Shown here in pieces: positions 13,291 through 62,492 of a stretch of DNA of 64,000 nucleotides. Source of the DNA: Tubulanus polymorphus (lineage: Eukaryota; Animalia; Nemertea). Made by a program: the position numbers and the translations under genes. The stretch lies in contig NC_134036.1 of NCBI RefSeq assembly GCF_964204645.1, positions 1,488,001-1,552,000 of the forward strand, read 5' to 3'. The notes beneath the pieces were generated by a model that was not told the DNA's origin, did no database searches, and worked only from the letters and a program-made list of their open reading frames with translations. Position 1 is the stretch's first letter. Each line of letters starts with the position of its first letter.

Positions 13291-14174
13291 GTACTCTACA
13301 AAGCTCGCTCTTGAAATAATTTAGGTTATTATTTCTGTTTCACCCCAATCACTTGAATCTCAAATTTCAAATTGCCAGTTAAGTGTTCAGCGCTACTTGT
13401 AAATAATTCATCGGTTGTCGCACAGATACGAGTCTGGAATATTAAATTATAAATTGTTGAGAAGTTTAGAAATTTAGTTTTATGTCTCGAAAAGTTCGCT
13501 TCGATAAATTGCAGACAAATTAGCGAAAAGCTTTGAAATAATTATGTTGTTATGTTGCATCGTCGACGTTTAGCTGAATAATTGATTATGCAAATTACCT
13601 AGAAACAAATAGCTACATATTAAACGCAACAATATGAAAATAATCACCATTGACGACAGTCGCGACGGATATTAAGCGATGGCTATTTGTAAAAATCTAC
13701 CCAAAGGACTGCAAACAATTTTGTCTCAGTAAAGAATAGTTGATCTGATCATGTAGATGGCTTTCTGATATGTCCCACGAGGGCTTTCTGATATGTCTCA
13801 CGAGAGCTTTCTGATATGTCCCAGGAGGGAATGTCCTGGCAGTCATTTTACCGCCATCAATCCGCATTAAACACCCACACGCACCCGACAGGTATACGTC
13901 GCTAGCAGATTTGTAATAATGAGTTTTTTATTTACGAGTATTTGTCGCTCTGCGGAGTATATCTCCCTTCGTCAAATTCTATTCTCACCTCTTCCCTCCA
14001 CCTGCTCTCTCCATCGCAAACAAACGCGCATAAATACTTTATATTTATTTTCAGATTTGAAAAAAGTCTTAAATTTGTTCGTTATTATTATTATCATGGT
14101 TTCTAGTCATTGTTATCATTAGTATATTCGGAATTTGAATACTAATCATGGTCAGAAAATGGCGGTACAGCTTT

Positions 14175-15830
14175 TCATTAGGATGCATTCAACTTCTAAG
14201 GCTTGGCTTCATTCAACTTCTTAGGTTTAGCTGCATTCAACTTCTTAGGTTTAGCTGCATTCAACTTCTAAGGCTTGGCTTCATTCAACTTCTTAGGTTT
14301 AGCTGCATTCAACTTCTTAGGTTTAGCTGCATTCAACTTCTAAGGCTTGGCTGCATTCAACTTCTTAGGCTTGGCTGCATTCAACTTCTTAGGCTAGGCT
14401 TCATTCAACTTCTTAGGCTTTGCCTCATTAAACTTCTTAGGTTTGGCTGCATTCAACTTCTTAAGTTTGGCTACATTCAACTTCTTAGGTTTGGCTGCAT
14501 TCAACTTCTTAAGTTTGGCTACATTCAACTTCTTAAGTTTGGCTACATTCAACTTCTTAGGTTTGGCTGCATTCAACTTCTTAAGTTTGGCTACATTCAA
14601 CTTCTTAGGTTTGGCTGCATTCAACTTCTTAAGTTTGGCTACATTCAACTTCTTAAGTTTGGCTACATTCAACTTCTTAGGTTTGGCTACATTCAACTTC
14701 TTAAGTTTGGCTACATTCAACTTCTTAGGTTTGGCTGCATTCAACTTCTTAGGTTTGGCTGCATTCAACTTCTTAGGTTTGGCTGCATTCAACTTCTTAA
14801 GTTTGGCTACATTCAACTTCTTAAGTTTGGCTACATTCAACTTCTTAGGTTTGGCTGCATTCAACTTCTTAGGTTTGGCTGCATTCAACTTCTTAAGTTT
14901 GGCTACATTCAACTTCTTAAGTTTGGCTGCATTCAACTTCTTAGGTTTGGCTTCATTCAACTTCTTAGGTTTGGCTGCATTCAACTTCTTAAGTTTGGCT
15001 ACATTCAACTTCTTAAGTTTGGCTACATTCAACTTCTTAGGTTTGGCTGCATTCAACTTCTTAAGTTTGGCTGCATTCAACTTCTTAGGTTTGGCTGCAT
15101 TCAACTTCTTAGGTTTGGCTGCATTCAACTTCTTAGGTTTGGCTGCATTCAACTTCTTAGGTTTGGCTGCATTCAACTTCTTAAGTTTGGCTACATTCAA
15201 CTTCTTAAGTTTGGCTACATTCAACTTTTTAGGTTTGGCTGCATTCAACTTCTTAGGTTTGGCTGCATTCAACTTCTTAAGTTTGGCTGCATTCAACTTC
15301 TTAGGTTTGGCTTCATTCAACTTTTTAGGTTTGGCTGCATTCAACTTCTTAAGTTTGGCTACATTCAACTTCTTAAGTTTGGCTTCATTCAACTTCTTAA
15401 GTTTGGCTTCATTCAACTTCTTAAGTTTGGCTTCATTCAACTTTTTAGGTTTGGCTGCATTCAACTTCTTAGGTTTGGCTTCATTCAACTTCTTAGGTTT
15501 GGCTTCATTCAACTTCTTAGGCTTTGCTTCATTCAACTTCTTAGGCTTGGCTTCATTCAACTTCTTAGGTTTGGCTGCATTCAACTTCTTGGGTTTGGCT
15601 GCATTCAACTTCTTAGGTTTGGCTACATTCAACTTCTTAAGTTTGGCTACATTCAACTTCTTAAGTTTGGCTTCATTCAACTTCTTAGGCTTGAATTCAT
15701 TCAACTTCTTAGGTTTGGCTGCATTCAACTTCTTAGGCTTGACTTCATTCAACTTCTTAGGTTTGGCTGCATTCAACTTCTTGGGTTTGGCTGCATTCAA
15801 CTTCTTAGGCTTTGCTTCATTCAACTTTTC
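14175..15830. repeat. 24-bp minisatellite, ~69 copies
   Basis: attcaacttcttaggtttggctgc with a few recurring variants; degenerate copies continue to ~16340. Confidence 0.97.
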
Positions 15831-17494
15831 AGGGATCGAAGCTTCTTAAGTAAGCAGGATTCAGCTTCTTAGGTATGAAGTCCATACCCAAGAAATTTAA
15901 TGCTCGCATCTATGAACCATACTATACGTCCCCATACCTAAGAACCCTACCATACATCCCCGAAGCTGATGCTCCCACATCTTAGAAGCTGAATTATCAC
16001 TCATCTAAGGAGCAAAACGCTGCCGCACTTAAGAAGGTAATGCTTTTATACCATTCCTAAGTAACTAATTAATGTACCTGGAGGATTCAGCTTCTTGGGT
16101 ATGGAGCTATCAGATAGTATTGACTTTTTTTATTCTGGAGCAAACCTGTATTTCATAGGTATGGGGAGCATTAGCTTATTAGACCATCTAATCCACCAAA
16201 TCACTGCTGCCATCGAAGTCGAATCGAATTCCTAAGTAAAGAAGCTGAACGCTACCTGGAGGATTCAGCTTCTTGGGTGTGGAGCTATCAGATAGTATTG
16301 ACTTTTTATATAGGAGCATTAGCTTATTAGATATGGGAACATTTGCCAATGTTGTTCTCCTCTGATAGTTTTTGCAATCTCTCATGCCTTCCTCTGTCTC
16401 TCGCCTCATCATCACCTCTTTAAATACCTCTCCATCTAATCCGTGCACTGCTGCCATAGGAGGAGGTGAGCAGTGATACAAATAACGATGCTGATGTCGA
16501 TGATAGTCCGCGGGGTGAATTTGTCACCGCGACCTGGGACTCCGGTCTATATCAGTATTCGGCCGCGGCAATCAATATTGATATCCACAGCTGAATCTGG
16601 TGCCGATAGAGAGATGTGTATGGATGTATTTAGATGATAGTCTGATGAAGATATATGAAGAATCAGTTAGTGAGGTCCCGAAGGAGGAAGGCGGCAAAAC
16701 AAATGTCGAATATTTATACAGAAATATTATAGATAAGGCCGTTAAAGAAGGCCGATGCATTGCAGATGATAGTTCATGGTCGGCCAGAAAATGTGATCGT
16801 CTAGCTAAGAGGGGAGGGGGATGGGCGCGGGGTACAGACAGCAGATTGATTGCTGCTTTTAAACACTAGGCTAATGTAACGAAGGTTCATTCGGTTTAAA
16901 CAAATTAAGAATTCACGCAATTCTAGTTACATTTTGATATAATCGGAACTGTGCTTAATTATTTATAACTTGTGAGAATATCAAGTTCGGCGTCCTTGAT
17001 CTCCCAGGGTTTGAAAGTCTCGTAAAATCTGGCTTCCATCCAAGACTGAATCGTAGTAAAAAAAGTTGATTAAAGCAATCTTAAAAATCTTATTAAGGAC
17101 GCCGTTTTCAACACTTAATTCTCGTCATGATTTCTGTAACACATAGCAACAAAAGTGTTTTTCAAATTGGCAATAACCGTGGCCGTTGAGATATAAACAT
17201 AGTGTTTTGGCCTTGCCAAGATCTTTTAGAGAAATGGGAGAGATTGGGATGGAGAGAGCGAGAGAGTGAGCGCCAACTAACCATTTTATGGGCTGACTAT
17301 GTACATGAGATCATGTAGATTTGGTCTCAAGACGCAAGAGGCCCATTTTCTTTAAGATAAAATCTTTTTAATTTAAGCCACGCGCAGGCGAGTAAGGCTG
17401 TAGAATTACTTATAGTGTTTTGACTATCTGCAGGACTTGCAGCAAAATTGTGCCTAGGCCTGTAAACAAATCAATACCTAAATGTTGCGATTTA

Positions 17495-41884: not shown

Positions 41885-44800
41885 CAATGAGCAACAATTA
41901 ATTTCAAAGATTCAAAGCCTAAAGAAAGGGTCTAATTGAAGACAATAACTAATTTCATAGATTCAAAGCCTAAACAATGAGTTTGATTGGAAACAATAAC
42001 TAGTTTCATAGATTAAAATCGTAAACAATGAGTGAGACTGAAAATAATAACTAATTTCATAGATTCAACGCCTAAACAATGAGTTTAATTCGAAACAATA
42101 ACTAATTTCATAGATTCAAAGCCTAAACAATGAGTCTAATTGAAAACAATAACTTATTTCATAGATTCAAAGCCTAAACAATGAGTCTAATTGAAGACAA
42201 TAACTTTTTTCATAGATTCAAAGCCTAAACAAAGAGTCTAATTGGAAACAATAACTAATTTCATAGATTCAAAGCCCAAACAATGAGTTTAATTCGAAAC
42301 AATAACTAATTTCATAGATTCAAAGCCCAAACAATGAGTTTAATTCGAAACAATAACTAATTTCATAGATTCAATGCCTAAACAATGAGTGTAACTGAAG
42401 ATAATAACTAATTTCATAGATTCAAAGCCTAAACAATGAGTTTGATTGGAAACAATAACTAGTTTCATAGATTAAAATCCAAAAAAATGAGTGTAACTGA
42501 AGATAATAACTAATTTCATAGATTCAACGCCAAAATAATGAGTTTAATTGAAGACAATAACTAATTTCATGCGTTCAAAGCCTAAACAATGAGTCTTATT
42601 GCAGACAATAACTTATTTCATAGATTCAAAGCCTAAACAATAAGTTTAATTCGAAACAATAACTAATTTCATAGATTCAAAGCCTAACAATGAGTCTAAT
42701 TGAAGACAATAACTAATTTCAAAGATTAAAAGCCTAAACAATGAGTCTAATTGGAAACAATAACTAATTTCATAGATTCAACGCCTAAACAATGAGTTTA
42801 ATTCGAAACAATAACTAATTTCATAGATTCAAAGCCTAAACAATGAGTCTAAGTGAAGACAATAACTTATTTCATAGATTCAAAGCCTAAACAATGAGTT
42901 TGATTGGAAACAATAACTAGTTTCATAGATTAAAATCCTAAACAATGAGTGAGACTGAAAATAATAACTAATTTCATAGATTCAACGCCTAAACAATGAG
43001 TTTAATTCGAAACAATAACTAATTTCATAGATTCAAAGCCTAAACAATGAGTCTAATTGAAAACAATAACTTATTTCATAGATTCAAAGCCTAAACAAAG
43101 AGTCTAATTGGAAACAATAACTAATTTCATAGATTCAAAGCCCAAACAATGAGTTTAATTCGAAACAATAACTAATTTCATAGATTCAAAGCCCAAACAA
43201 TGAGTTTAATTCGAAACAATAACTAATTTCATAGATTCAATGCCTAAACAATGAGTGTAACTGAAGATAATAACTAATTTCATAGATTCAAAGCCTAAAC
43301 AATGAGTTTGATTGGAAACAATAACTAGTTTCATAGATTAAAATCCTAAACAATGAGTGTAACTGAAGATAATAACTAATTTTATAGATTCAACGCCAAA
43401 ATAATGAGTTTAATTGAAGACAATAACTAATTTCATGCGTTCAAAGCCTAAACAATGAGTCTTATTGAAGACAATAACTTATTTCATAGATTCAAAGCCT
43501 AAACAATGAGTCTAATTGGAAAAAATAACTAATTTCATAGATTCAAAGCCTAAACAATGAGTCTAATTGGAAACAATAACTAATTTCATAGATTCAAAGC
43601 CCAAACAATGAGTTTAATTGAAGACAATAACTTATTTCATAGATTCATAGCCTAAACAATGAGTTTAATTGAAGACAATAACTTATTTCATAGATTCAAA
43701 GCCTAAACAATGAGTTTAATTCGTAACAATAACTAATTTCATAGATTCAAAGCCGAAACAATGAGTCTAATTGAAGACAATAACTAATTTCATAGATCCA
43801 AAGCCTAAACAATGAGTCTAATTGAAGACAATAACTAATTTCATAGATTCAAAGCCTAAACAATGAGTCTAATTGAAGACAATAACTTATTTCATAGATT
43901 CAAAGCCTAAACAATGAGTCTAATTGGAAACAATAAGTAATTTCATAGATTCAAAGCCCAAACAATGAGTTTAATTCGAAACAATAACTAATTTCATAGA
44001 TTCAAAGCCTAAACAATGAGTCTAATTGAAGACAATAACTTATTTCATAGATTCAAAGCCTAAACAATGAGTTTAATTCGAAACAATAACTAATTTCATA
44101 GATTCAATGCCTAAACAATGAGTCTAATTGAAGACAATAACTTATTTCATCGATTCAAAGCCTAAACAATGAGTCTAATTGGAAACAATAACTAATTTCA
44201 TAGATTCAAAGCCCAAACAATGAGTTTAATTCGAAACAATAACTAATTTCATAGATTCAATGCCTAAACAATGAGTGTAACTGAAGATAATAACTAATTT
44301 CATAGATTCAAAGCCTAAACAATGAGTCTAATTGAAGACAATAACTTATTTCATAGATTCAAAGCCTAAACAATGAGTCTAATTGAAGACAATAACTTAT
44401 TTCATAGATTCAAAGCCTAAACAATGAGTTTAATTCGAAACAATAACTAATTTCATAGATTCAAAGCCTAAACAATGAGTCTAATTGAAGACAATAACTT
44501 ATTTCATAGATTCAAAGCCTAAACAATGAGTTTAATTGGAAACAATAACTGATTTCATAGATTCAAAGCCCAAACAATGAGTTTAATTCGAAACAATAAC
44601 TAATTTCAAAGATTAAAAGCCTAAACAATGAGTCTAATTGAAGACAATAACTTATTTCATAGATTCAAAGCCTAAACAATGAGTCTAATTGAAGATAATA
44701 ACTAACTTCATAGATTCAAAGCCTAAACAATGAGTCTAATTGAAGACAATAACTTATTTCATAGATTCAAAGCCTAAACAATGAGTTTAATCGAAGACAA

Positions 44801-47800
44801 TAACTTATTTCATAGATTCAAAGCCTAAACAATGAGTCTAATTGGAAACAATAACTAATTTCATAGATTCAACGCCTAAACAATGAGTTTAATTCGAAAC
44901 AATAACTAATTTCATAGATTCAAAGCCTAAACAATGAGTCTAAGTGAAGACAATAACTAATTTCATAGATTCAAAGTCTAAGCAATGAGTCTAATTGAAG
45001 ACAATAACTTTTTTCATAGATTCAAAGCCTAAACAATGAGTTTAATCGAAGACAATAACTTATTTCATAGATTCAAAGCCTAAACAATGAGTCTAATTGG
45101 AAACAATAACTAATTTCATAGATTCAACGCCTAAACAATGAGTTTAATTCGAAACAATAACTAATTTCATAGATTCAAAGCCTAAACAATGAGTCTAAGT
45201 GAAGACAATAACTTATTTCATAGATTCAAAGCCTAAACAATGAGTTTGATTGGAAACAATAACTAGTTTCATAGATTAAAATCCTAAACAATGAGTGAGA
45301 CTGAAAATAATAACTAATTTCATAGATTCAACGCCTAAACAATGAGTTTAATTCGAAACAATAACTAATTTCATAGATTCAAAGCCTAAACAATGAGTCT
45401 AATTGAAAACAATAACTTATTTCATAGATTCAAAGCCTAAACAAAGAGTCTAATTGGAAACAATAACTAATTTCATAGATTCAAAGCCCAAACAATGAGT
45501 TTAATTCGAAACAATAACTAATTTCATAGATTCAAAGCCCAAACAATGAGTTTAATTCGAAACAATAACTAATTTCATAGATTCAATGCCTAAACAATGA
45601 GTGTAACTGAAGATAATAACTAATTTCATAGATTCAAAGCCTAAACAATGAGTTTGATTGGAAACAATAATTAGTTTCATAGATTAAAATCCTAAACAAT
45701 GAGTGTAACTGAAGATAATAACTAATTTCATAGATTCAACGCCAAAATAATGAGTTTAATTGAAGACAATAACTAATTTCATGCGTTCAAAGCCTAAACA
45801 ATGAGTCTTATTGAAGACAATAACTTATTTCATAGATTCAAAGCCTAAACAATGAGTCTAATTGGAAACAATAACTAATTTCATAGATTCAAAGCCTAAA
45901 CAATGAGTCTAATTGGAAACAATAACTAATTTCATAGATTCAAAGCCCAAACAATGAGTTTAATTGAAGACAATAACTTATTTCATAGATTCATAGCCTA
46001 AACAATGAGTTTAATTGAAGACAATAACTTATTTCATAGATTCAAAGCCTAAACAATGAGTTTAATTCGAAACAATAACTAATTTCATAGATTCAAAGCC
46101 TAAACAATGAGTCTAATTGAAGACAATAACTAATTTCATAGATCCAAAGCCTAAACAATGAGTCTAATTGAAGACAATAACTAATTTCATAGATTCAAAG
46201 CCTAAACAATGAGTTTAATTCAAAACAATAACTAATTTCATAGATTCATAGCCTAAACAATGAGTTTAATTGAAGACAATAACTTATTTCATAGATTCAA
46301 AGCCTAAACAATGAGTTTAATTCGAAACAATAACTAATTTCATAGATTCAAAGCCGAAACAATGAGTCTAATTGAAGACAATAACTAATTTCATAGATCC
46401 AAAGCCTAAACAATGAGTCTAATTGAAGACAATAACTAATTTCATAGATTCAAAGCCTAAACAATGAGTCTAATTGAAGACAATAACTTATTTCATAGAT
46501 TCAAAGCCTAAACAATGAGTCTAATTGAAGACAATAACTTATTCAATAGATTCAAAGCCTAAACAATGAGTCTAATTGAAGACAATAACTTATTTCATAG
46601 ATTCAAAGCCTAAACAATGAGTTTAATTCGAAACAATAACTAATTTCATAGATTCAAAGCCTAAACAATGAGTCTAATTGAAGACAATAACTTATTTCAT
46701 AGATTCAAAGCCTAAACAATGAGTTTAATTGGAAACAATAACTGATTTCATAGATTCAAAGCCCAAACAATCAGTTTAATTCGAAACAATAACTAATTTC
46801 AAAGTTTAAAAGCCTAAACAATGAGTCTAATTGAAGACAATAACTTATTTCATAGATTCAAAGCCTAAACAATGAGTCTAATTGAAGATAATAACTAATT
46901 TCATAGATTCAAAGCCTAAACAATGAGTCTAATTGAAGACAATAACTTATTTCATAGATTCAAAGTCTAAGCAATGAGTCTAATTGAAGACAATAACTTA
47001 TTTCATAGATTCAAAGCCTAAACAATGAGTTTAATCGAAGACAATAACTTATTTCATAGATTCAAAGCCTAAACAATGAGTTTAATTCGAAACAATAACT
47101 AATTTCATAGAATCAATGCCTAAACAATGAGTTTAATTGAAGACAATTACTTATTTCATAGATTCAAAGCCTAAACAATGAGTTTAATTGGAAACAATAA
47201 CTAATTTCATAGATTCAATGCCTAAACAATGAGTCTAATTGAAGACAATAACTTATTTCATAGATTCAAAGCCTAAACAATGAGTTTAATTGGAAACAAT
47301 AACTAATTTTATAGATTCAAAGCCTAAACAATGAGTCTAATTGAAGACAATAACTTATTTCATAGATTCAAAGCCTAAACAATGAGTCTAATTGAAGACA
47401 ATAACTTATTTCATAGATTCAAAGCCCAAACAATGAGTTTAATTCGAAACAATAACTAATTTTATAGATTCAAAGCCTAAACAATGAGTCTAATTGAAGA
47501 CAATAACTTATTTCATAGATTCAAAGCCTAAACAATGAGTCTAAATGATGACAATAACTAATTTCATAGAGTTAAAGCCCAAACAATGAGTCTAATTGAA
47601 AACAATAACTAATTTGATAGATTCAAAGCTTGAACAATGAGTTTAATTGAAGACAATAACTCATTTCATAGATTCCAAGCCTAAACGATGAGTCTGATTG
47701 AAGACATAACCAATCATAAAGATTTAAAGCCTGAACAATGAGTTTAATTGAAACAATAACTCATTCATAGACTCCAAGCCTAAACAAAGAGTCTGATTGA

Positions 47801-47925
47801 AGACAATAACTCATTGCATAGATTCAAAGCCTAAACAATGAATTTAATTGAAGACAAAAACTAATTTCAGAGATTCAAAGCCTAAACAATGAGTTTAATT
47901 GGAAACATTAACTAATTTCATAGAA
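41885..47925. repeat. 51-bp satellite, ~118 copies, inverted relative to 33150-34732, with higher-order structure
   Basis: Unit ttcaaagcctaaacaatgagtctaattgaagacaataactaatttcataga. Confidence 0.97.
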
Positions 47926-48344
47926 CCTATGTTTCCTAAACAACAAGAAAAATAAAATCTCAACTTACGAATTTAGTGTGTGTGTCTGTGAGCATTTTCT
48001 TGGTTTATATTTTTCTTGTTGAGAGAAGTGACATCCAAACTACAGCAGACAGCTCAGAGAGCAGGTTGGTTTAGTCAGCACCCATTGGAAATCAGGTCCT
48101 GTTGAGACGAAGGTCCGGAATCTACCAAATGTTGGTTCAACAAACTCGCATCAGCCGAGGTCCTGGGGAAAAAGTGCTCACCTGAAAAAATTGATAACCT
48201 CACCATCAAATTCACTCAACCAGAGGCTATTTATATTTTGAAGTAAAAATGCTAATGAGGACTTTTCTGTTTCATGACTCAGATTAGCTAAATCCCACCC
48301 TAACATAAGTTTCACATACGAAACTTGCTTAAACATCTACTTAC

Positions 48345-51465: not shown

Positions 51466-51669
51466 TCATCCAAAACGGAATAACAGAAAAACCGCGGAGT
51501 AAATCATCAGGTTCATCCTGTAGGTGGCAGCACTGTTGCACATTTTGTCTTCGTTACAGCACAGCACATTGATCCTGTCTTTGCCATTTATCGACCACTC
51601 GCCTTGACATTTATCAGGATTCTCGGGCATACAACCTCGAATAACCGCCACTTTTTTGTACTTGAATTC
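51466..51669 (-). CDS. Paralog 1 exon 4
   Basis: ttattcag|EFKYKK...FRFG*, 204 nt; matches ORF 51466..51708. Confidence 0.85.
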   Translation of the reverse strand, partial: EFKYKKVAVIRGCMPENPDKCQGEWSINGKDRINVLCCNEDKMCNSAATYRMNLMIYSAVFLLFRFG

Positions 51670-53657
51670 CTGAATAAGAACGAAAAAATACAAATTAGCC
51701 AAAACCAATGAATGTCAGCTATATGTTTTCATCTAAAAGCATGGATGATTTTTCCAGTTGGGATATGGAGTATTCTGAAAACACACAGTCTCACATGCCA
51801 CAGGCGGTGTCGTCGAGAAAACTTAATTCAGTATGATCGTACCTGAGGTCGAGGAAATAATGAAAACGGTTTGCGATGGAGATTTAAAATACGTCCCGAT
51901 ATCCTTCCCAGGACAGAGGGAGAGGGAGAGCCAGGAGAGGGAGAGCAAGGAGAGGGAGAGGGAGAGCCAGGAGAGGGAGAGGGAGAGGGAGAGGGAGAGG
52001 GAGAGGGAGGAGAGGGAGAGTTAGGAGAGGGAGAGGGAGAGCCAGGAGAGGGAGAGGGAGAGGGAGAGGGAGAGGGAGAGGGAGAGGGAGAGGGAGAGGG
52101 AGAGGGAGAGGGAGAGTTAGAGAGAGAGCCCCTTGTGTTTGGTCCTACACTTACCACGCATTCGTGTTTTTCGGGGCAATCGATACCGATAATGTTTTCC
52201 AGGTAGAACTGATAATCTTCATCAACGCGTACCAATGGTCCATTGTCACCCTTGATAACCAATACACGGCGCATGCATTCCTTGGTGAAATAAGGCAGTT
52301 TACCAGTTCCGTTTGCGGTATTCGGATCAAGCATTCCAACTGAAGTTAAGTGAAATAAAGTTGTTAGACCCGTGCAGGGGGACTAGTAGGGGACTCGTGC
52401 TGGGGAGTAGGAGGGGGCTTATGCTGGGGACTAGTGATGGTTGAGTCTCGTGATGGTCGTGTTCTGTAAGGGAGTATGACCACTGGATGCGGTCTCGTGG
52501 CAATGGCGTGGTCCCGCGTGATAGTTCGGATCTCGTGGAGGTGGCACTAGGGGGCGTTCTCTGACACAGGATCCCTGCCAACACGCGATCATTATTATAA
52601 CTAGAGTAGGGTTGCGTGTGAATTTCAAAGCTATAAATCCAACCATCGATGTGGAATGAAAAGAGGTTCTTCTTCTTTATCTATGACATCGCCAACGCCG
52701 CTGCGTCACGATGTGATGTACAAGGCACCTCCAATTATTACGGTCTACAGTAAATTCCTCCAGGAAAGTTAACGTTTCGCTTGGTGATGTGAATCAATAA
52801 CTGATAACATTAAACAGGCCTCATCCTTGGCCTTGAATTGCGATTTACTTAATACAAATTCAACTTACGTTTATCGGCAAAGTTTTTCATATCATCATAG
52901 ATAGCCTTATCACCATAGTGCGCACAACTGGCACAAGTCAAACTCGTAACGACTGTGACTAAAAATAAGATTCCAAGGTATCAGAATTGATGATAGCTGA
53001 TCCCTTTCTAAATTAGTAAGTCATCGAATCGTTGCAGTTGTCGCTTTTTGTGAGTCACAATTTTAATTTACAATTCAATTTCAAGTCGTCATTTCAATAA
53101 ATCGTTTAAGGCTGGCTGTCGACAAGCAACGCGACGCCTTCCGACTCCTTCCGACGCAACTGAGAGCAACCGCGATCGCAGCCCAGCTTATGTCGACTGC
53201 GCTCCGATTCGCAGCAACTGAGGTCCTCGATCCTCCTAGTTGCTTCCCTGCTTAATGTCGGTTACGATTACTGACAACTGCAACGGCTCAGATGGTCACG
53301 TGATAAGCATTTTGAGGATAAATTTACATGAACCTGTCCCGGCAAAGTTTTTCAGATCATCATAGATAGCCTTATCTCCGCCATGGCAAGCACACATGGC
53401 ACAAATCAGTTTATCAGGACGAGCTGCAGTGCCTGAAGAGACAGCCACACTGCCAGGACTGGGTGGACATTTCAATAAATCGTTAACGTCCTCGCTATGA
53501 TGACTTGAACGAAGTCAACTGTATGTATTGATTACACAAATCATAAATAGAAGCTTTGATAAAACTTTTTTGAGAACTTTTTATAAAATAGAAACTTACC
53601 CTGAACTAACAGAACCAGCAGAACTGTTGTAACAGAAATAAACTGTATCAGTTTCAT
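51466..53657 (-). CDS. Ly6/uPAR three-finger GPI-anchored protein, paralog 1 (178 aa with exon 2b, 181 aa with exon 2a)
   Basis: Exons 53657-53600 ([19 protein letters not shown]), 53432-53334 (2a) and/or 52958-52869 (2b), 52339-52155 and 51669-51466. All are in frame with GT-AG boundaries. The protein ends in IRGC...[32 protein letters not shown]. Confidence 0.85.
51915..52128. repeat. (GAGAGG)n in intron 3 of paralog 1
   Basis: Direct reading; source of the GE/SP/ER pseudo-ORFs. Confidence 0.95.
52155..52339 (-). CDS. Paralog 1 exon 3
   Basis: acttcag| 185 nt |gtaagt; [21 protein letters not shown]...[11 protein letters not shown]. Confidence 0.85.
52869..52958 (-). CDS. Paralog 1 exon 2b
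   Basis: tatttttag| 90 nt ([30 protein letters not shown]) |gtaagt. Confidence 0.75.
53334..53432 (-). CDS. Paralog 1 exon 2a (candidate alternative exon)
   Basis: ctcttcag| 99 nt ([33 protein letters not shown]) |gttcat; weaker donor. Confidence 0.5.
53600..53657 (-). CDS. Paralog 1 exon 1 (signal peptide)
   Basis: 58 nt, ends CAG G|GTAAGT. Confidence 0.85.
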
Positions 53658-53745
53658 TCTGTCGTCTTTTGAAGTTTCAGCAATTCCACTGACGATTGGT
53701 TGGGTAATCTTTGTAGCGACTGTTACCACGAGAGTTTGAACCACA

Positions 53746-53775
53746 AACTGATCAGTCGGACTGGAGATTTATATA
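53746..53775 (-). promoter_or_regulatory. TATA box + initiator of paralog 1
   Basis: TATATAAA followed about 26 nt later by TCAGTT (Inr-like); conserved in all three paralogs. Confidence 0.6.
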
Positions 53776-55283
53776 TTTTGACTGAAGATACCGTTTAGGC
53801 TTCTAAAGAATTTATCAGGACACTGGCGGTAACGGCTTCACGAGATAAAGAATTCATTTACATTTGTTAAATCAGTATGATCAGCCGGTCCAGTTACTGT
53901 TTGGGCTTCCGAAGAATTCGTGTTTTATCTGAATCGGTACAGGTTTGTCATGAAATGATTCATTTATTTGTATCCAAAACAATAAAGGTTATGGTTACTT
54001 TCCTTATATTTTTTCCAGTCTCGTAGGCGTTGAAAAAAAGAAAACTTTCGATTCGAAATAATTCAAATTAACGGACAAAAATTGAAATTCTCAGAGCGAT
54101 GACGCTACAATTGTTGTGAGTTAACGGTAACGGTTTGTCGAGATAAAGAATTTCATTAATAACAGCAAGACGTATATTGGAGATTGACGAAAAGTTGTTT
54201 TTTTTAAACTGATAGAAACGCTGAAATTAACGGACATTTTTTTATCATAAGTTGGATAACAGATTTGACGGAGTTCAAAATGATTGCCGAGGTGGGAAAA
54301 ATATTTTTCGAAAATAATTTTTTTCCTCAAAACATAGTAATTCAGTGAACGAGGAATTCAAAAGATAAATGAACAACTTGTCTTGGAGGTTGTTTCGGGA
54401 TAGTTATATCCGAATGTAGTCTATTTACTGCTTACAGTCAACTGACGCCGCCATTTTTGCAAGTGACGCTATTTACCGAACGAAACCGACAAATAAATCA
54501 TCCTGATAGTCCATGCTCATTTCGATCAAAAAAGTTATGCTGTTTTACTTCTACAATTGCTATCGTGCAGGTTTTCATATAACTACACGTGCTATATTTA
54601 CTGGACTAATCCCTCGGTTTGGGTCGGGTTGATGAGATGCAGCACTCGGGTAGAAATACATCGAGAATGGAGAATTTTGTTGGAGAAGTTTCATCCAGGA
54701 AGGTCAAGGTTAGAACAAAATCAACAAAAAGAAATAAAAGAAAAACTGAAATAATTCTCGTGCATTTAAGCGATTACTTTTACTTTATCGCGTAAAAATG
54801 AATTTAAAAATTTCAAATAAAACGAAACAAAACATAAAATTTGAATAGAAATATTAATTAATTGATAAATATAATTGAGAAAATTACAAGATTATGATTT
54901 GTACATTGAAAAATGAAACGAAATTCTTGAAATATTAAATATGAATTAAAATCGATTAATATGAATTATTTAGATAAAAAAAATCGCTAATCAAGATAAA
55001 TTCGACATAGAATGAAAGTGATATGAAATAAAGCGCTGGTAACAATAGTGTGTGTAAATCTATTGAAATCTGAGCATATGCAAAACTGAATGGCACAAAA
55101 ACTGAAATGAGAAAGTCAAACATGTCGATTTTGTCAGAATTTTCAACAAGTGAAATAAACGACAATGTTATCTATAGCAAACTCGGGTTGAGTTACTTTT
55201 GATAACCTAAAACTAAGCCTAAAAAGCAAAATATATGTTTCAATTTCCGGTAGGCGGCGTGCGAGTCGAATTTACAGAATCGA

Positions 55284-55496
55284 TTATATAAACAAAATGA
55301 AATAACAGAAAAACAGAGAAACCGCGGAGTAAATCATCATATTCATCGTAAAGGTGGCAGCACTGTTACACATGTTGAAATCTTCACAGCAGAGCACCTT
55401 GACCTTCTTGTCACCGACCAGCCACTCCTCTTGGCATTTACCAGGATTCTGAGGCATACAACCTTTGATAACCAGACTTTTTTTGTACATGAATTC
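55284..55496 (-). CDS. Paralog 2 exon 4 (open frame, LU C-terminus + GPI signal)
   Basis: ttttcag|EFMYKKSLVIKGC...LCCEDFNMCNSAATFTMNMMIYSAVSLFFCYFILFI*. Confidence 0.75.
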   Translation of the reverse strand, partial: EFMYKKSLVIKGCMPQNPGKCQEEWLVGDKKVKVLCCEDFNMCNSAATFTMNMMIYSAVSLFFCYFILFI

Positions 55497-56024
55497 CTGA
55501 AAATTGAAAACAAACCAAATCTGTAAAAAAAACATAGTTATAATAGCGATGTGAGTTATGAATCTTTAAGTGCATTTTCTCTCATGATTCTGTTGAGGAC
55601 CACATGGGCCACATGGGCAAAACGCAGTGAGACTTGGTCCAAACCATTTGACAATGCTGGAAGTCACCATTTTGATAGGATAACATTTTTCGGTATGGCC
55701 GTTTTTTATCATTAATTTTCTCATATATCTATGAGGCTTATTTCGACATATTTCACCGGTCCATGGAATTCTGCTTGATTCTTGGAGATTTGTCTCATCT
55801 CGGACACTCCTCTCAGGAGAGAGGCCTTCACCCTAGATACCCCTCTCAGGAGAGAGGCCTCCACCCCGACACGCCTCTCAGGAGAGGGGCCTCACTCCGG
55901 ATACCCCTCTCAGGAGAGGGGCTCCAACCGGGACACACTTTTCCTGGAGAGGGGCCTCACCCCGGAATCCCTTCCCTGGCGAGACACGACCCTCCCAGAC
56001 GGAACCGTAATGCTCTACACTTAC

Positions 56025-56212
56025 CACGCATTCATGTTTTTTGGGGCAATCGATCCCGATTATGTTATCCATAAAGAACTGGTACCTATCATTGTTAAGT
56101 TCCATGGAGTCAGACTTTCGATCATCATCGTCCCATATAGTGCGCGTGCATTCCTTGGTGAAATATGGCTGTTTACCAGTTCCGTTTGCGGTTTTCGGAT
56201 CAAGCATTCCAA
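56025..56212 (-). CDS. Paralog 2 exon 3 (open frame)
   Basis: cctcag| 188 nt |gtaagt; GMLDPKTANGTGKQPYFTKEC...GIDCPKKHECV. Confidence 0.7.
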
Positions 56213-57062
56213 CTGAGGTAAAAATAAATAAATTGGTTAGACTCGTACTAGGGAGTATAAAGGGACTAGTAGGGGACTCGTGATGAGTAGTATAAAGGGA
56301 CCAGTAGGGGACTCGTGATGAGTAGTATAAAGGGACTAGTAGGGGACTCGTGATGAGTAGTATAAAGGAACTAGTAGGGGACTCGTGCTTGGGACTAGTA
56401 GGAGACTCGTGATAGGAGTATGACCTCTGGGCACGGTTCTGCGGCAGTGTCCCGCGTGATGGTTCTAATCCCCGTAAGGCTGTGGGGCAGGGGATCTTCA
56501 CTGACACAGGATCTTTGCTATCACGCGCGATCCTAACTAAGTGCGGGATTTCCTATAAAAACTAATCCCATTATCGACATGGAATAAGAAGATGTTGAAT
56601 TTCTCGCTGCTGACCGACACAATGAATAAATAATCAAAATATAGTAAAAACAACTTACGTCCATTTGCAAATGTGTCCATAAGATCATAGAATGCCTCAT
56701 ATTTTCTGTCACTAAATCTGTCAGTAAATACAAGCGGCACAGGTGAGATTAGCAGGACGACCTGCAGTGCCTGAAAATTAGATTACAACGTTGTATCAGA
56801 ATTGAGGGAATGTGATTTTCCTGATCGAAACCTCTTAGGGTTAATTAAATTACGAACAATTGCTTCGATAAAATGTTTTGTAAGGGACTGCAAAATATGT
56901 AAAATACAAACTTACCCTGAGCTAACAGAACCAACAGAACTGCTGTAACCGTAATAAACTGTATCAGTTCCATCCTGTCGTCTTTTGAAGTTTCAGCAAT
57001 TCCACTGCTTTGATAGCTTTGATAAAACCTTTTTGAGAACTGTTTATAAAATACAAACTTAC

Positions 57063-57120
57063 CCTGAGCTAACAGAACCAACAGAACTGCTGTAACCATA
57101 ATAAACTGTATCAGTTCCAC
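57063..57120 (-). other. Second (upstream) copy of paralog 2 exon 1 with ATG changed to GTG
   Basis: GTG GAA CTG ATA CAG TTT ATT ATG GTT...CAG G|GTAAGT, near-identical to 56916-56973. Confidence 0.8.
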
Positions 57121-57200
57121 CCCCTCGTCTTCCTAAGTTCAGTGACAAAACCGTTTAGATGATCTCTGTAGCGACTGTTACCACAAGAGTTTGAACCACA

Positions 57201-57230
57201 AACTGATCAGTCGGATTGGAGATTTATATA
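57201..57230 (-). promoter_or_regulatory. TATA box + initiator of paralog 2
   Basis: TATATAAATCTCCAATCCGACTGATCAGTT. Confidence 0.6.
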
Positions 57231-59874
57231 GTTAGACCGAGGATACCGTTTAGGCTGCTAACGAATTTATCAGGACACTGGCGGTAACGGCTTCACGAGA
57301 TAAAGAATTCATTTACATTTGTTAAATCAATAGATCAGCTGGTCCAGTTACTGTTTTGGCTTCCGAAGAATTCGTGTTCTATCTGAACCGGTACAGGTTT
57401 GTCATGAAATAATTCATTTATTTATATCCAAAACAATAAACGTTATGGTTACTTGCCTTAGATTTTTCCAGTCTCGAAAGCGATGCTAAAAGAAAACGTT
57501 CGATTCAAAATTCAAATTAACGGTAACAGTTTGTCGAGATAAAGAATTCATTTATATAATTTATATATTTTACAGATATTTAAAAGGAAGCTTCGTATAC
57601 TAAAGATATCTTGACATTAGTGACACAAAAATAGTTAACCTAATGTTTAAGTTTAGATGCGACAGTCACAATCTTAGGATTGAAACAGGTAGATGGAAAC
57701 GCCGAGAGAAAACCGCACTTGTACAACTTGCTCCACTGACGAAATTGAGGACTAACATCACGTTCTCACGTCCTGCCCCTCATACAACTCGCTTCGAAGT
57801 AATCTCGTTATTTTAGAACGCATCCTAGCATGGCAAAATTCATTCAACTTCTAACTACTAATTCGATATGAAAACTTAGAGATATGCTTAAGAGATATTT
57901 AAAGAGATATGTTGGAAGATATTTGATTTCAATGCTCAGAAGACGGAGAACGCTTCGAGGCGACGAAACCGAGTAAATACAGCTACCCAATCAACTTGAT
58001 ATTTCCGTTTTTTTTCAACATGTAATTTTGTATTAAATTATTTTGTTGAAATTTGTAATTTTGATTATCCGTCATACAAGTGTACACACTTTGATGAAGA
58101 ATAAACTATATTAAATATAAAAAGACGTGAAATTCCGTTATTGGAGATTGACAAAAAAGTTGCTTTTTCAACTGATGAAAACGTTGTAATAAACGGACAT
58201 TTTTTATCATAAGTTGGATAACAGATTTGATGGAGTTTGAAATGATTGCCGAGGTGGGAAAGATAGTTCCCACCGCCATTTTTGCAAGTGACGCTATTTT
58301 CTGAACGGAACCGACAAATATATCCAGTAGAACAGCCATTGGCCACCGCAAGTTTTTGTTAGTGAAGTCGCAGTGGAAAATATGCTTTAATCACCATGTA
58401 TCTGAACTTAAAAATAAGAGGGCGGCGGGATTATTGATGGAGAATTTCGGGTAGGGGTTCATCCAGGAAGGTCAAGGTTTGAACAAAATCAACTAAAAGG
58501 AATTAAACAAAAACAGGAAATAATTTTCGTGCATTTAATTAAGCAATAACTTTTACTCTATCGCGTGAAAATGGATTTAAACGCTTTATTCATAACGAAA
58601 CACTTCAAAACAAAAAATCTGAACTAAAAATTGATTAATTTGAATGAAAAATATTAATCTGAATCAATAGAATTGAGACGATTACAAGATTGAGGAATAA
58701 ACACATTCAAAATGAAACTCAAATCTTCAAAACTTTAATATTTGTTTTAGAAATTTAATTATTTGAATCTCTTAACACAAAATAAATCAATAATCAAGAT
58801 ATAATTTTACATTGAAATGAAAGAGATATGAAATAAAGAGCTTATAACAATAATGTGTGTTCATCTATTGATATCTGAGCATATGCAAAACTGAATTAAA
58901 CAAAAATCGAAATGAGCAAGTCAAACATGTTTGAATGTGTTGAAATATCTATGTAAAATCCCAAAGAATGAATCATAATTTTCTTTTAACGAGTTTGAAT
59001 ATATAAAACATTAACAGACTCTAATTAATTGAATTAGAATCAGAATTTTAACGCATACAGAATAAACGACAATTGATCTATCGCAAACACATTGCGAGCT
59101 GATTCACTTTTGATATTTGTAAACAGATTTAAAATGTTGTACTTGTACTTCAACAAACAGATTGTCAGAACAAATTCAAAAATTAAGACAATTACAAGAT
59201 TAACACTACGTGCAATATTAAATATAGAGAGATATTAAATAAAATGCCTGCAACAATAATGTGTGTAAATCGATTGATATCTGAACAAATGCAAAACTGA
59301 ATTAAACAAAAATCAAACATGTCAACATAAATTAAATTTGCGAAACAAAATCATATTTGATTGAATTCGAATCGGAATTTTTACCCTATGAAATAAACGA
59401 AAATGTAATCTGTAACAAACCCAACTCGGGCTGAGTTACTTTTGATAACTGAAAAAGAAAATACTCAACAGATTTGAACCGTCAGTCAGAACGAATTCGT
59501 TCGATATTTCTAGAATGGCATTCTTTGCCGTGTACGTAAGAATCTAATGTGAAACTCGAATCAGAACAGAATCTAAAGCAATCAATATTTAGCACTATGG
59601 ATGATTATAAATTCGTAAATTTCTAAGCATGAAAACAAATTGATTAAATATTTCTAGAATGACATTCTTTGCCGTGTATATAATAAGTATATAATATGAA
59701 ACTCGAATCGGAACAGAATCTAAAGCAATAAATATTTACTTCTAAGATTAAAAAAATCTTCCAAAATATAAATCCGATCATTAATTTAATCATTCGTTTT
59801 ACACTAAGCCTAAAAAGCGAAATATATGTTTCAATTTCCGGTAGGGGGCGTGCGAGTCGAATTTACAGAATCAA

Positions 59875-60087
59875 TTATGTAAACAAAATGAAATAACAGA
59901 AAAACAGAGAAACCGCGGAGTAAATCATCATATTCATCCTAAAGGTGGCAGCACTGTTGCACATGTTGATTTCGTCACAGCAGAGCACCTTGAAGTCCCT
60001 GCCATTGATCTCCACAGTAGATTGACATTTACCAGATAGCTCGGGCATACAACCTCGAATGACCGCATCATTTCTGTACTGGATTTC
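59875..60087 (-). CDS. Paralog 3 exon 4 (RGC...CC...CN + GPI signal)
   Basis: ttttcag|GAA ATC...ACA TAA, 213 nt. Confidence 0.88.
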   Translation of the reverse strand, partial: EIQYRNDAVIRGCMPELSGKCQSTVEINGRDFKVLCCDEINMCNSAATFRMNMMIYSAVSLFFCYFILFT

Positions 60088-61625
60088 CTGAAAATAGTAA
60101 AGAAAACTTACAAATTAGCTTAAAGCCTCAGCCCGGACCCCCCTCCCAGTAGAGATGCGAATTGTACACCTTTCAGTGATGTTTTTCATACGATTATTTG
60201 TGGAGGGTCACGTGAGAATTTTATGCAAAACAAGTTGAAAGTTGCAAGACGCCATTTTGTTCGGCTCATTTTACCCGGTATCGTCGTATTTTCCAATTCC
60301 ATTTTCCAGAGGCTGATTTTATCATATTATATATATTATGCTCATTCGATCATGGATATCTTAAATCCGTTCTCCTAGAAGAGAGAGGCCTCATCCCGGG
60401 AAACCCCAGGAGATTGGTTTCACCGCAACACTCTTCCCAGGAGGGGATTTTCCATCCCGGAAACCCCAGGGCCTGGTTTCATAGACTGAGTATCAAAGTT
60501 ATCCCCAGGGGTAAATCCTCAATCTGGGTGACAACCACCATGGTTACAATGAGAAACCATGGTAATAACTGACAAATTTCAAAATGTTCCCAGGGACTAT
60601 TTTTCTTCCACATCTATGAAACCCAGCCCAGGAGATTGGTTTCACCGCAACACTCTTCCCAGGAGGGGATTTCCCATCCCGAGCACCCCAGGAGATTGGT
60701 ATCACCGCAACACCCTCCCCAGGAGAGAGGTCTCACTACAGACACCCCCTCCAGGGTCAGAAATAGACCCTCCGCGGAGTTGCTATGTATTGTCCTATAC
60801 TCACCATGCATTCGTGGTTTACGGGGCAATCGATACCGGTTATGTTATTCAAGAAGAACTGATACTCTTTTTCAACGCGTTCCAGATCGTCTTGATCTTT
60901 AGGGTCATTCCACATATTTCGCATGCATTCCTTTGTGTTATAAGGCGTTTTAGCAGTCGTCCAGTCAATAACATCCTGATCAAGCATTCCAACTGTAACA
61001 AGAAAACCGACTTGAAAGTTTATTGACGCCTTGATAAACTAACATACATATACCGCTTAATATCGTCGACAATAAATGTCATAATATAATGAAATGATAT
61101 TAAGGATCGACAAATTTAATGTGGATTTGAATTACACATTAGTTCAGTGAGACAAGGCGCGATGCTGTATCATCCACTAACAGCGCTGAGTGTGACAAGT
61201 GGGTTCGAGTCCTGCTGGCTACCTACAGCGCGCGGGCAGCACTTTCAAAGGTCGAGGTCCCGTCGTATCAGGCGCGGATCCAGAGGGGGGTTTCAGGGGT
61301 CGTCACCCCCCCCCCCCTGCTCAGCTACCAAAAAAAATTTTGTAATCATTTTCTTGAAGGAATGTACGCATGTCCTCTGAGACAAAGCGAACAGTATCAC
61401 ATAATCGATACCATATCATCTTATGTTTGGCCAAACAATATGCCGTAGGCCCCCCCCTATCAGAGATTTTTAGTCGGCGGATTTACATTAACATTTTGTT
61501 TGGCCAAACAATATGCCGTAGGCCCCCCCTATCAGAGATTTTTAGTCGGCGGTTTAACATTAACATTTTGTTTGGCCAAACAATATGCCGTATAATAATA
61601 ATGATAAAAATAATAATAATAATAA

Positions 61626-61656
<31 letters not shown>

Positions 61657-62382
61657 AATAATAGGCATTTAAAGAACGCACTACATTACGCATCTCAGTG
61701 CGATTTACAATAAGAAAAGGGAGTAAAAAAACAAGTAAAAATGCAAAAAAAATGTTCTTTATGTTTTATGTTTAGATTTAAAATCAATGTTATTACAGTA
61801 ATTCCGAAGATTAAGAGTCGTATTATTGTCGACAGTTAAGGTGAACGGGGCGCGGGGTTTCCGCTGACACAGGAACCTTGTTATAGTCTCACGATCTTTA
61901 TACTTCTATTTTAACTAAAAAAGGGTTTCGTATTAATTTCATAGAAACCTAGAAACAACTTACGTTCATTGGCAAAGTCTCTCATATCATCATAGATAGC
62001 CTTATCTCCATCATAGTAAATACAAATGGCACAAATCAGTTTATCGGGACGCACTGCATTGCCTGAAAATTAGATTACAACCTATCACAGAATTGAAGAT
62101 GATTGATCCCTGTTAAAATTAGTAAGTCATCGAATTGTTGCAGTTGTCACAATTTTTGAGTCACAAATTTGTAAGTCGTCATTTTAATAAGTCGTTTCAA
62201 CTCGATCCCGGCCTCGCTATGAGACTTGACCGAATTCGAATTTATATATGTAATAAACAAATGATAAATAGCTTTGATAGCTTTGATAAAGTTTTTGAGA
62301 ACTATTTATAAAATACAAACTTACCCTGAGCTACCAAAACCAACAGAACTGCTGTAACCGTAATAAACTGTATCAGTTCCAT
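59875..62382 (-). CDS. Ly6/uPAR (three-finger, LU-domain) GPI-anchored protein, paralog 3, intact, 185 aa, 4 exons
   Basis: Exons 62382-62325, 62062-61964, 60992-60805 and 60087-59875 have GT-AG boundaries, phases 1,1,0, and total 558 nt. Protein: [185 protein letters not shown]. It has a signal peptide, LxCxxC, RGC, CCx5CN and a hydrophobic GPI-type tail. Confidence 0.88.
60805..60992 (-). CDS. Paralog 3 exon 3
   Basis: ttacag| 188 nt |gtgagt; overlaps ORF 60757..60987. Confidence 0.85.
61180..61272 (+). mobile_element. SINE-like dispersed repeat (other copies at 49485-49575 on + and 31515-31590 on -)
   Basis: Shared gggttcgagtcctgctgg...cagcgcgcggg...aaaggcc/tcg...ccgtcgt. Confidence 0.5.
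61590..61712 (-). mobile_element. 3' tail of an L2/CR1-type LINE or partner SINE with (AAT)n
   Basis: (AAT)n followed by gcatttaaagaacgcac...ctcagtgcgatttacaa resembles the reverse-complemented stem-loop tail of L2-clade elements. Confidence 0.4.
61964..62062 (-). CDS. Paralog 3 exon 2 (LICAIC)
   Basis: attttcag| 99 nt |gtaagt, phase 1-1, open frame. Confidence 0.85.
62325..62382 (-). CDS. Paralog 3 exon 1 (signal peptide)
   Basis: ATG...CAG G|GTAAGT, 58 nt, same length in all paralogs. Confidence 0.85.
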
Positions 62383-62462
62383 CCTGTCGTCTTCCTAAGT
62401 CCAGTGACGAAACCGTTTAGATGATCTCTGTAGCGACTGTTACCACAAGAGTTCGAACCACA

Positions 62463-62492
62463 AACTGATCAGTCGGATTGGAGATTTATATA
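62463..62492 (-). promoter_or_regulatory. TATA box + initiator of paralog 3
   Basis: Identical TATATAAA...TCAGTT block about 85-110 nt upstream of the ATG. Confidence 0.6.

Follow-up and report, generated by a model that had tools for sequence, protein, structure and literature searches.

The 64,000-nt stretch of the Tubulanus polymorphus genome analysed here (the window; C12:1488001-1552000 in an assembly of 268 Mb) carries, on its minus strand between positions 51466 and 62382, three tandem paralogs for small cysteine-rich proteins, which we read as members of a divergent Ly6/uPAR (LU, three-finger) family with an enlarged first finger. The three genes, here called copies C, B and A, extend from the ATG of copy C (62382) to the stop codon of copy A (51466). 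When the exons were rebuilt by script, each gene consisted of four exons with intron phases of 1, 1 and 0; identical phases had been claimed in the original prediction, a first reading of the DNA that preceded this analysis. Every acceptor in the three copies is AG and every donor GT; most donors read GTAAGT or GTGAGT, and all are close to consensus except the weak donor of exon 2a in copy A (GTTCAT). Exon 1 (58 nt, with a phase-1 end) carries the start codon and encodes the signal peptide. Exon 2 (99 nt; 90 nt in version 2b of copy A, 112 nt in copy B) runs from phase 1 to phase 1 and contributes C-x2-C and the motif AIYDDM..FA. Exon 3 (188 or 185 nt) encodes the rest of an insert in finger 1, Cys3, the motif YQF...NI.GI.CP, Cys4 and Cys5, and ends in phase 0, whereas exon 4 (213 or 204 nt) covers Cys6 through CC-x5-CN (fingers 2 and 3), a hydrophobic tail and the stop codon. 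The two intact genes encode precursors of ~180 aa for the secretory pathway, composed of a signal peptide, a cysteine-rich domain and a hydrophobic C-terminal tail.

Copy C is intact. Its joined product of 185 aa equals XP_074661538.1 ("uncharacterized protein", Tubulanus polymorphus; P0002 in our set) letter for letter; therefore, the NCBI annotation independently reached the identical splice model. A look-up for gene calls around the locus returned no contig records encoding P0002. Copy A is intact as well, and its product measures 181 aa with exon 2a or 178 aa with exon 2b. These two versions of exon 2 lie 375 bp apart and the frame is kept with either of them. Both are also present in A', the counterpart of copy A in a duplicated cluster described below, 2a with 100% identity and 2b with an in-frame 6-nt difference. 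Because both are retained there, we suggest 2a and 2b as candidate mutually exclusive alternative exons.

Copy B is disabled, because its exon 2 is out of frame and contains an in-frame TGA; a broken member had been implied when the cysteine pattern was originally ascribed to the "intact copies". At 112 nt, it is the only exon 2 of the family with a length not divisible by three. A contig from the run of a second sample (X3, record 17) spans 56618-56785 and is identical to the letters of copy B exon 2, which makes a private assembly error an unlikely cause of the defect. Exon 1 of copy B, together with the beginning of intron 1, furthermore lies in a tandem duplication of ~154 bp (within 56916-57120), and the duplicate that adjoins a TATA-like motif is the one starting with GTG. 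A joint between 57007 and 57162 in X3 was considered as an allele and rejected, since 15 letters match the promoter region of copy A, as is the case for a cross-mapped paralog.

A word search seeded with exon 3 of copy A led to P0001 (XP LOC141914093, 182 aa), which the exons of the window match at expectation values (E) from 1e-12 to 1e-37. Full-length searches were then run with P0002 (= copy C) and P0001 as queries. Among 1.84e9 and 5.8e9 sequences, searched with P0001 and a six-member profile, the only relatives found were six annotated T. polymorphus proteins, and HMMER returned four clusters from 1.84 billion representatives, all of them from T. polymorphus. No full-length homolog in a described family appeared in either collection, in agreement with the original prediction. 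In six-frame searches of the genome, ~25 last-exon loci were located on C12, C9, C4, C2 and C1. They are accompanied by a compact related subfamily of five or six near-identical copies, five of them spread over 750 kb at C4:19887158-20641412 and one on the unplaced C61:38107-39124, in which the last exons score identically and the introns are short. The restriction to one species may partly reflect sampling, as T. polymorphus may be the sole annotated palaeonemertean in the collections.

A second cluster is situated on the plus strand at C12:1,985,228-1,997,981, ~440 kb from the window cluster. It is an inverted segmental duplicate with the order C'-B'-A' and shares 94-97% identity with the window cluster in long blocks. 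Here, B' (= P0001) is intact and C' has a frame-breaking exon 3. With B broken in the window and C' in the duplicate, each cluster has thus lost a different gene. Between A and A', 12 non-synonymous and 4 synonymous differences were counted, corresponding to a ratio of non-synonymous to synonymous divergence (pN/pS) of ~0.8; although based on small numbers, this points to weak recent constraint. One explanation for such a pattern is that the array is mostly decaying DNA, made up of neutral young duplicates with scant or no expression, in which the frames of A and C are open merely through recent duplication. The broken gene in each set of three and the pN/pS value fit this explanation, and so does the outcome of the search for transcripts, which found none. 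Of the runs retrieved, three are DNA-like, and a fourth from 2015, possibly RNA, contains none of the locus; alignment of the runs to 56500-62450 gave only colinear genomic contigs, with no exon-exon joints. Copy A is also missing from the protein collections in which its neighbour C is present. However, with mutual identities of only 54-58%, A, B' and C still fully keep the framework, i.e., ten cysteines, splice sites, phases, signal peptide, tail and the motifs of the insert, which speaks for long-term purifying selection on the family. Distant paralogs with 28-31% identity retain the framework, too, and the differences in exon 2 length are multiples of three in all copies but B. We therefore consider a mostly decaying array very improbable.

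The gaps between consecutive cysteines measure 2, 41, 32, 5, 13, 7, 14, 0 and 5 residues in copy C and 2, 39, 32, 5, 13, 7, 15, 0 and 5 in the 2b form of copy A, in both cases followed by N; these are exactly the gaps of the 10-Cys pattern noticed before. From Cys1 to the final N, copy C counts 130 residues, which agrees with the ~130 aa first estimated for the domain. In the six annotated family members, 8 of the 10 cysteines are invariant together with the N, an S and one Gly, and the first two cysteines are absent solely from P0004, which is N-terminally truncated. This corresponds to the stereotyped order of 8-10 cysteines in the LU superfamily, with the characteristic ending CC/CxC-x4/5-C-N. 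In LU domains of the CD59 type, the disulfides connect C1-C5, C2-C3, C4-C6, C7-C8 and C9-C10.

Canonical LU genes of the same genome, found with the QVR model, provide a direct comparison. They follow the pattern C-x2-C-x7-C-x13-C-x5-C ... C-x8-C-x14-CxC-x5-CN over ~84 aa, and the spacing of the family from Cys4 to CN (C-x5-C-x13-C-x7-C-x14-CC-x5-CN) matches them. When the last exon of the family was compared with the canonical LU last exons by hhalign, the two aligned in register (P 0.017). The last intron of the window genes lies one residue past Cys5 and their exon 1 ends in phase 1; two canonical LU genes also have an intron between Cys5 and Cys6, of which the exact place and phase differ (phase 1 in one gene) or are tentative, so that the intron position is suggestive of homology at most. 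Genome-wide, the QVR model matched these other loci and none in the window.

Further evidence comes from the relatives. Residues 85-160 of P0005 match UPAR_LY6 with E 0.0011 over profile positions 26-82 of 82 (19.8 bits; cut-off 24.8), and P0005 matches Toxin_TOLIP with E 0.054 (14.7 bits; cut-off 21.2), as the only protein of the family to do so. Residues 90-160 of P0003 match QVR with E 0.0091 over positions 24-86 of 86 (17.4 bits; cut-off 27.3), and P0004 matches it with E 0.39. These sub-threshold matches of three paralogs to the LU clan are in register, and all of them reach the profile end. For the AlphaFold model of P0005:40-158, the best 50 rows of a Foldseek search against the PDB were without exception three-finger proteins (50/50, E 0.4-2.5). 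VIA-align superposed this model with three-finger toxins at Z 3.0-4.4 and a root-mean-square deviation of 2.8-3.6 A, in alignments that took in 55-63 of 60-65 toxin residues and left out the insert. For copy C itself, ESM Atlas features linked the protein to Quiver, QVR, Toxin_TOLIP and Activin_recp clusters with scores of 0.91-0.92 and 171-175 shared features. At least 8 of 10 Atlas structure rows belonged to the LU clan (UPAR_LY6, QVR, Activin_recp, ecTbetaR2) with template modelling (TM) scores of 0.34-0.43 by query; the top row was an unnamed arthropod cluster with TM 0.49 by query, and by target the values rose up to 0.60. Among the matches listed by Foldseek for the copy C model, ~10 of ~40 were three-finger ectodomains (TbRII, BMPRII, GPIHBP1, C4.4A) with E ~1. 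From this evidence we infer an LU fold for the window proteins and put the probability that their domain is a very divergent LU domain at ~85%.

Several results weigh against this reading. In Pfam, the window exons, P0001 and P0002 have no LU match at E up to 10, and no family of any kind reaches E 0.01 on the window proteins or exons. The curated cut-off of the LU clan (CL0117) was reached by no family member tested, so the anticipated confirmation by UPAR_LY6, QVR or Toxin_TOLIP failed for the window proteins and amounts to the in-register, sub-threshold matches of the three paralogs. A Pfam cut-off is a criterion of detection, and a protein failing it may still have the fold. Among shuffled proteins, 4-10% also obtain feature scores of 0.9 in the Atlas. 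AlphaFold modelled copy C with low confidence, at a predicted local distance difference test score (pLDDT) of 62.5 and a predicted TM score of 0.55; the model has four strands in the Cys4-Cys10 part. Against the PDB, Foldseek found nothing at E <= 0.001 for this model; VIA-align, in a wide search and a second look, found none with Z >= 2; and the Atlas gave unrelated bacterial families at TM ~0.3 with no clear match. The structural check originally proposed has hence a divided outcome, in that the P0005 model matches only three-finger proteins and the copy C model has no significant match, and the P0005 model is with a pLDDT of 56 the weaker of the two. Both models rest on alignments of only six full-length sequences, which explains their low confidence. 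The lack of structural matches for copy C was considered as a sign of a new fold; we rejected this and read it as the consequence of a poor model.

Several other matches were discarded. The Pfam hits of single exons, P0001 and P0002 to the ET module (0.019, copy C exon 4), DUF7622 (0.11), Tfb2_C (0.05) and ZF-HD_dimer (0.03) are at chance level, and alpha-cobratoxin in the PDB sequence search was not significant (E 6). The zinc fingers of PRDM9, which the family profile retrieved from PDB sequences as its best match (E 3e-5), are spurious, as they stem from one motif that repeatedly matches the zinc-finger linker. The segment in question, T-G-K-x-P-Y-F-T-K-E-C, is located in the first part of the insert in P0001-P0006 (copy C residues ~60-76) and mimics the C2H2 linker TGEKPY..C.

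The same evidence bears on the possibility of a lineage-specific cysteine-rich alpha/beta fold outside the LU clan, in which CC-x5-CN and the spacing would be convergent. All LU models of Pfam staying below threshold, the copy C model without a three-finger match in VIA-align or the Atlas, and an insert without relatives that makes almost half of the domain helical or unassigned would be expected in that case. It would leave unexplained, however, why three paralogs match three LU-clan profiles in one register, why the best 50 Foldseek rows of the P0005 model are all three-finger proteins and why the ESM feature and structure neighbours belong to the LU clan, one unnamed arthropod cluster aside. 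The consecutive spacings 5, 13, 7, 14, 0, 5 plus N fit the LU type as well, and so does the layout with a signal peptide and a GPI (glycosylphosphatidylinositol)-type end. A fold other than LU appears improbable to us on this account. As to the proposal of a lineage-specific LU subfamily, the restricted tandem family and its LU-like cysteine framework were recovered, whereas the window proteins reach no Pfam threshold.

What sets the family apart is the length of finger 1. About 60 extra residues are placed wholly between Cys2 and Cys4, where the family has Cys2-x33/41-Cys3-x10/32-Cys4 and the canonical genes of the genome have Cys2-x7-Cys3-x13-Cys4. As a result, the domain spans 130 aa vs ~84 aa in the canonical local genes and exceeds the compact 70-100 residues of typical LU domains. 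The term "greatly enlarged", used in the original prediction, is fair for finger 1; measured against the "about 100 residues" given for a Ly6 domain (PMC3058042), the whole domain is only ~30% longer. Both motifs that had looked helical in the sequence fall within helices of the AlphaFold models: the AIYDDM..FA segment is predicted as a 16-residue helix in both models (copy C residues 37-52) and the YQFF segment as a second helix in the copy C model (residues 93-102), with pLDDT values of 50-77 for these blocks in copy C. The first part of the insert (Cys2-Cys3) exists in every full-length member and is conserved with 50-59% identity among A, B' and C, compared to 50-60% in the core. The second part (Cys3-Cys4) is less conserved and shorter in P0005 and P0006. 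Searches with the insert alone (residues 34-107) yielded no relatives, with ESM Atlas scores < 0.8 and unrelated structure rows.

Regarding the two ends of the proteins, hydropathy peaks of 2.9-3.4 at the N terminus and 2.4-2.7 at the C terminus support the signal peptide and hydrophobic tail noticed originally, and no polar extension follows the tail. After the last cysteine, the small residues N-S-A-A are followed by the hydrophobic tail, which continues to the stop codon; a small-residue site and then a hydrophobic tail of 15-20 residues occur in every family member. By rule, such an arrangement (signal peptide, small-residue site, spacer and hydrophobic tail, no cytoplasmic extension) is that of a GPI-anchored Ly6 protein, and it suggests that the window proteins would be GPI-anchored. 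Signal peptide and tail were judged by hydropathy and rule of thumb, which for GPI anchoring we count as a point against the reading.

These tails also bear on another explanation, in which the epidermis or proboscis secretes the proteins as three-finger toxin-like or defence factors and the C-terminal tail is removed or does not anchor them. Nemerteans are toxic, and their toxin families are reported to evolve through duplication and positive selection (PMC10674772). The family is confined to one species and has undergone tandem duplication and gene death, the young pair A/A' has a pN/pS of ~0.8, and the P0005 model has mostly snake three-finger toxins as its structural neighbours. Such matches reflect a shared fold and not a function, though, and the possible RNA run of the species contained no sequence from the locus. 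Furthermore, a small-residue site and a tail of 15-20 residues in every member correspond to GPI-anchored Ly6 proteins and not to secreted toxins. Because every member carries this tail, we assign a low probability to a role as secreted toxins.

The joint explanation that we favour, with a probability of about 75%, is a tandem T. polymorphus family of GPI-tethered, divergent LU binding proteins with an enlarged finger 1. The weak recent constraint between A and A' and the possible RNA run devoid of the locus count against it. In the corresponding mechanism, the tail would be cut off and a GPI anchor joined near N-S-A-A, so that the domain would sit on the outside of the plasma membrane. Fingers 2 and 3 would be formed, with canonical spacing, by the residues from Cys4 to CC-x5-CN, the LU core would serve as the scaffold, and finger 1 (Cys2-Cys4) would have grown from ~12 to ~74 residues with two predicted helices. 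A partner, which could be a receptor, a channel or a ligand, would be bound through the fingers, most plausibly through the enlarged finger 1. Such binding is suggested for the window proteins by analogy to GPI-anchored Ly6 proteins (PMC3058042, PMC10264074, PMC6502960). The fast birth and death of copies is compatible with a role in recognition or defence, and the earlier suggestions of an ion-channel modulator, a recognition molecule or a toxin relative may be entertained by analogy only.

A more far-reaching idea is that the addition to finger 1 constitutes an autonomous two-helix subdomain, stapled by the Cys2-Cys3 disulfide, which arose in the Tubulanus lineage and offers a new binding surface. 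Exons 2a and 2b would then swap the first helix and give isoforms different specificities, and the rapid turnover of the ~25 copies would stem from a function in recognition (self/non-self, gamete or prey/pathogen) and not from a housekeeping one. We regard this combination as speculative and rather unlikely.

The coordinates of the exons and of a putative promoter motif are compiled in Table 1.

Table 1. Exons of copies C, B and A and the TATA-like motif upstream of copy C (window positions)
Feature	Positions	Strand	Description
Copy C exon 1	62325..62382	-	Start codon and signal peptide, 58 nt, phase-1 end; N-terminal hydrophobic peak 3.26
Copy C exon 2	61964..62062	-	99 nt, C-x2-C and AIYDDM..FA; helix predicted by AlphaFold at residues 37-52
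Copy C exon 3	60805..60992	-	188 nt; rest of insert, Cys3, YQF...NI.GI.CP, Cys4, Cys5
Copy C exon 4	59875..60087	-	Cys6 to CC-x5-CN, GPI-type tail, stop
Copy B exon 1a	57063..57120	-	Degenerate exon 1 duplicate, GTG in place of ATG
Copy B exon 1b	56916..56973	-	Exon 1 with intact ATG
Copy B exon 2	56659..56770	-	112 nt, out of frame; in-frame TGA just past C-x2-C
Copy B exon 3	56025..56212	-	Open; DNA 97% identical to P0001 exon (second cluster)
Copy B exon 4	55284..55496	-	Open; DNA 94% identical to P0001 exon 4
Copy A exon 1	53600..53657	-	Signal peptide
Copy A exon 2a	53334..53432	-	99 nt, weak GTTCAT donor, extra (eleventh) Cys
Copy A exon 2b	52869..52958	-	90 nt, consensus donor, yields 10-Cys pattern
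Copy A exon 3	52155..52339	-	185 nt
Copy A exon 4	51466..51669	-	Fingers 2 and 3, CC-x5-CN, GPI-type tail, stop
TATA-like motif TATATAAATCTCC	62480..62492	-	~100 nt upstream of copy C ATG, inside conserved block

The 13-nt TATA-like motif TATATAAATCTCC recurs in the conserved block upstream of copy B (57218-57230) and copy A (53763-53775), and its position would suit a promoter element. Just downstream of the exon 3 donor, intron 3 of all three copies contains a purine/pyrimidine-rich minisatellite (51915-52128, 55803-55964 and 60627-60755), with (AGAGGG)n as the unit in copy A and units of 31-32 bp in B and C; these minisatellites are the reason for long spurious open reading frames that run on from exon 3. 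Two very high-copy repeats reside in the introns of copy C (60480-60678 and 61077-61474), with a word depth of ~35,000 and ~2,000 in the DNA run X1 vs ~30 in the flanks. The repeat at 61077-61474 includes the tRNA-like B-box GGTTCGAGTCC. A tRNA in this intron 2 repeat was rejected as ARAGORN made no call, and the repeat is probably an element of the short interspersed nuclear element (SINE) type.

Elsewhere in the window, a 6-kb block (42000-48000) stands out from the rest by its GC content of 27%, by an AT skew that stays at +0.2 and by a GC skew of -0.13. At 14148-15872, three frames on both strands are open over 468-574 aa; the AT skew there is -0.3 and Pfam gives a sub-threshold DUF match alone; this is a low-complexity or repeat region and not a gene.

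Among known systems, the Quiver/Sleepless type (QVR, PF17064; e.g., Drosophila Boudin, Coiled and Bero) has the signal peptide, the single 10-Cys domain ending in CN and the GPI-type tail in common with the family. It is the nearest by language-model features and the best Pfam match of P0003 and P0004, and its sequence outside the cysteines is extremely variable, as here (PMC3058042). The family differs by staying below the cut-off (best 17.4 vs 27.3 bits), by the ~74 residues from Cys2 to Cys4 compared to ~21 in the canonical genes of the same genome, by the predicted helices in the insert and by Cys8 and Cys9, which are adjacent (CC) and not one residue apart (CxC) as in the local QVR-type genes. 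The vertebrate Ly6/uPAR proteins (UPAR_LY6, PF00021; CD59, Lynx1, PSCA, GPIHBP1, Bouncer) resemble the family in the CC-x4/5-CN ending, the Cys4-Cys10 spacing and the GPI-type end, and PSCA, SLURP-1, GPIHBP1, Prod1 and uPAR are among the structural matches of the P0005 model. Here, the differences are the sub-threshold matches, the length of 130 aa vs 70-100 and the ~60-residue finger 1 insert, which has no counterpart in these proteins.

More distant are the ectodomains of TGF-beta/activin type II receptors (Activin_recp, ecTbetaR2), three-finger domains with extended loops that appear as weak neighbours of the copy C models. They form the N-terminal part of a transmembrane kinase, whereas the family lacks a kinase part and has a GPI-type C terminus, so that the likeness is one of fold level only. 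The snake three-finger toxins (Toxin_TOLIP, PF00087) are the best structural matches of the P0005 model (Z up to 4.4). In contrast to the family, they are secreted, measure 60-75 residues and have neither a GPI signal nor a finger 1 insert; toxic activity is not implied for the family by this resemblance.

Few small extracellular scaffolds of animals are as adaptable as LU domains, which act as toxins, channel modulators, complement inhibitors, fertilisation factors and junction organisers, and lineage-specific expansions with extreme divergence are normal for the Ly6 superfamily. What is new is a subfamily missed by the clan models and known only from "uncharacterized LOC" entries, with a large, partly helical and conserved addition to finger 1. 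Its significance is moderate, given that it has so far turned up in a single species and that Ly6 families often expand within one lineage. LU proteins occur in all metazoan phyla, and a census based on hidden Markov models (HMMs) of the Pfam clan counted 58 in one nemertean genome (PMC13719153). The ~25 loci that went undetected by the Pfam clan models mean that HMM censuses undercount divergent LU members. Birth-and-death evolution is neatly illustrated by the reciprocal gene loss in the inverted clusters and by the doubling of exon 2. If the insert is a real subdomain, the three-finger scaffold would tolerate, or even exploit, a large non-beta addition, which would inform both the evolution of this fold and the engineering of three-finger binders.

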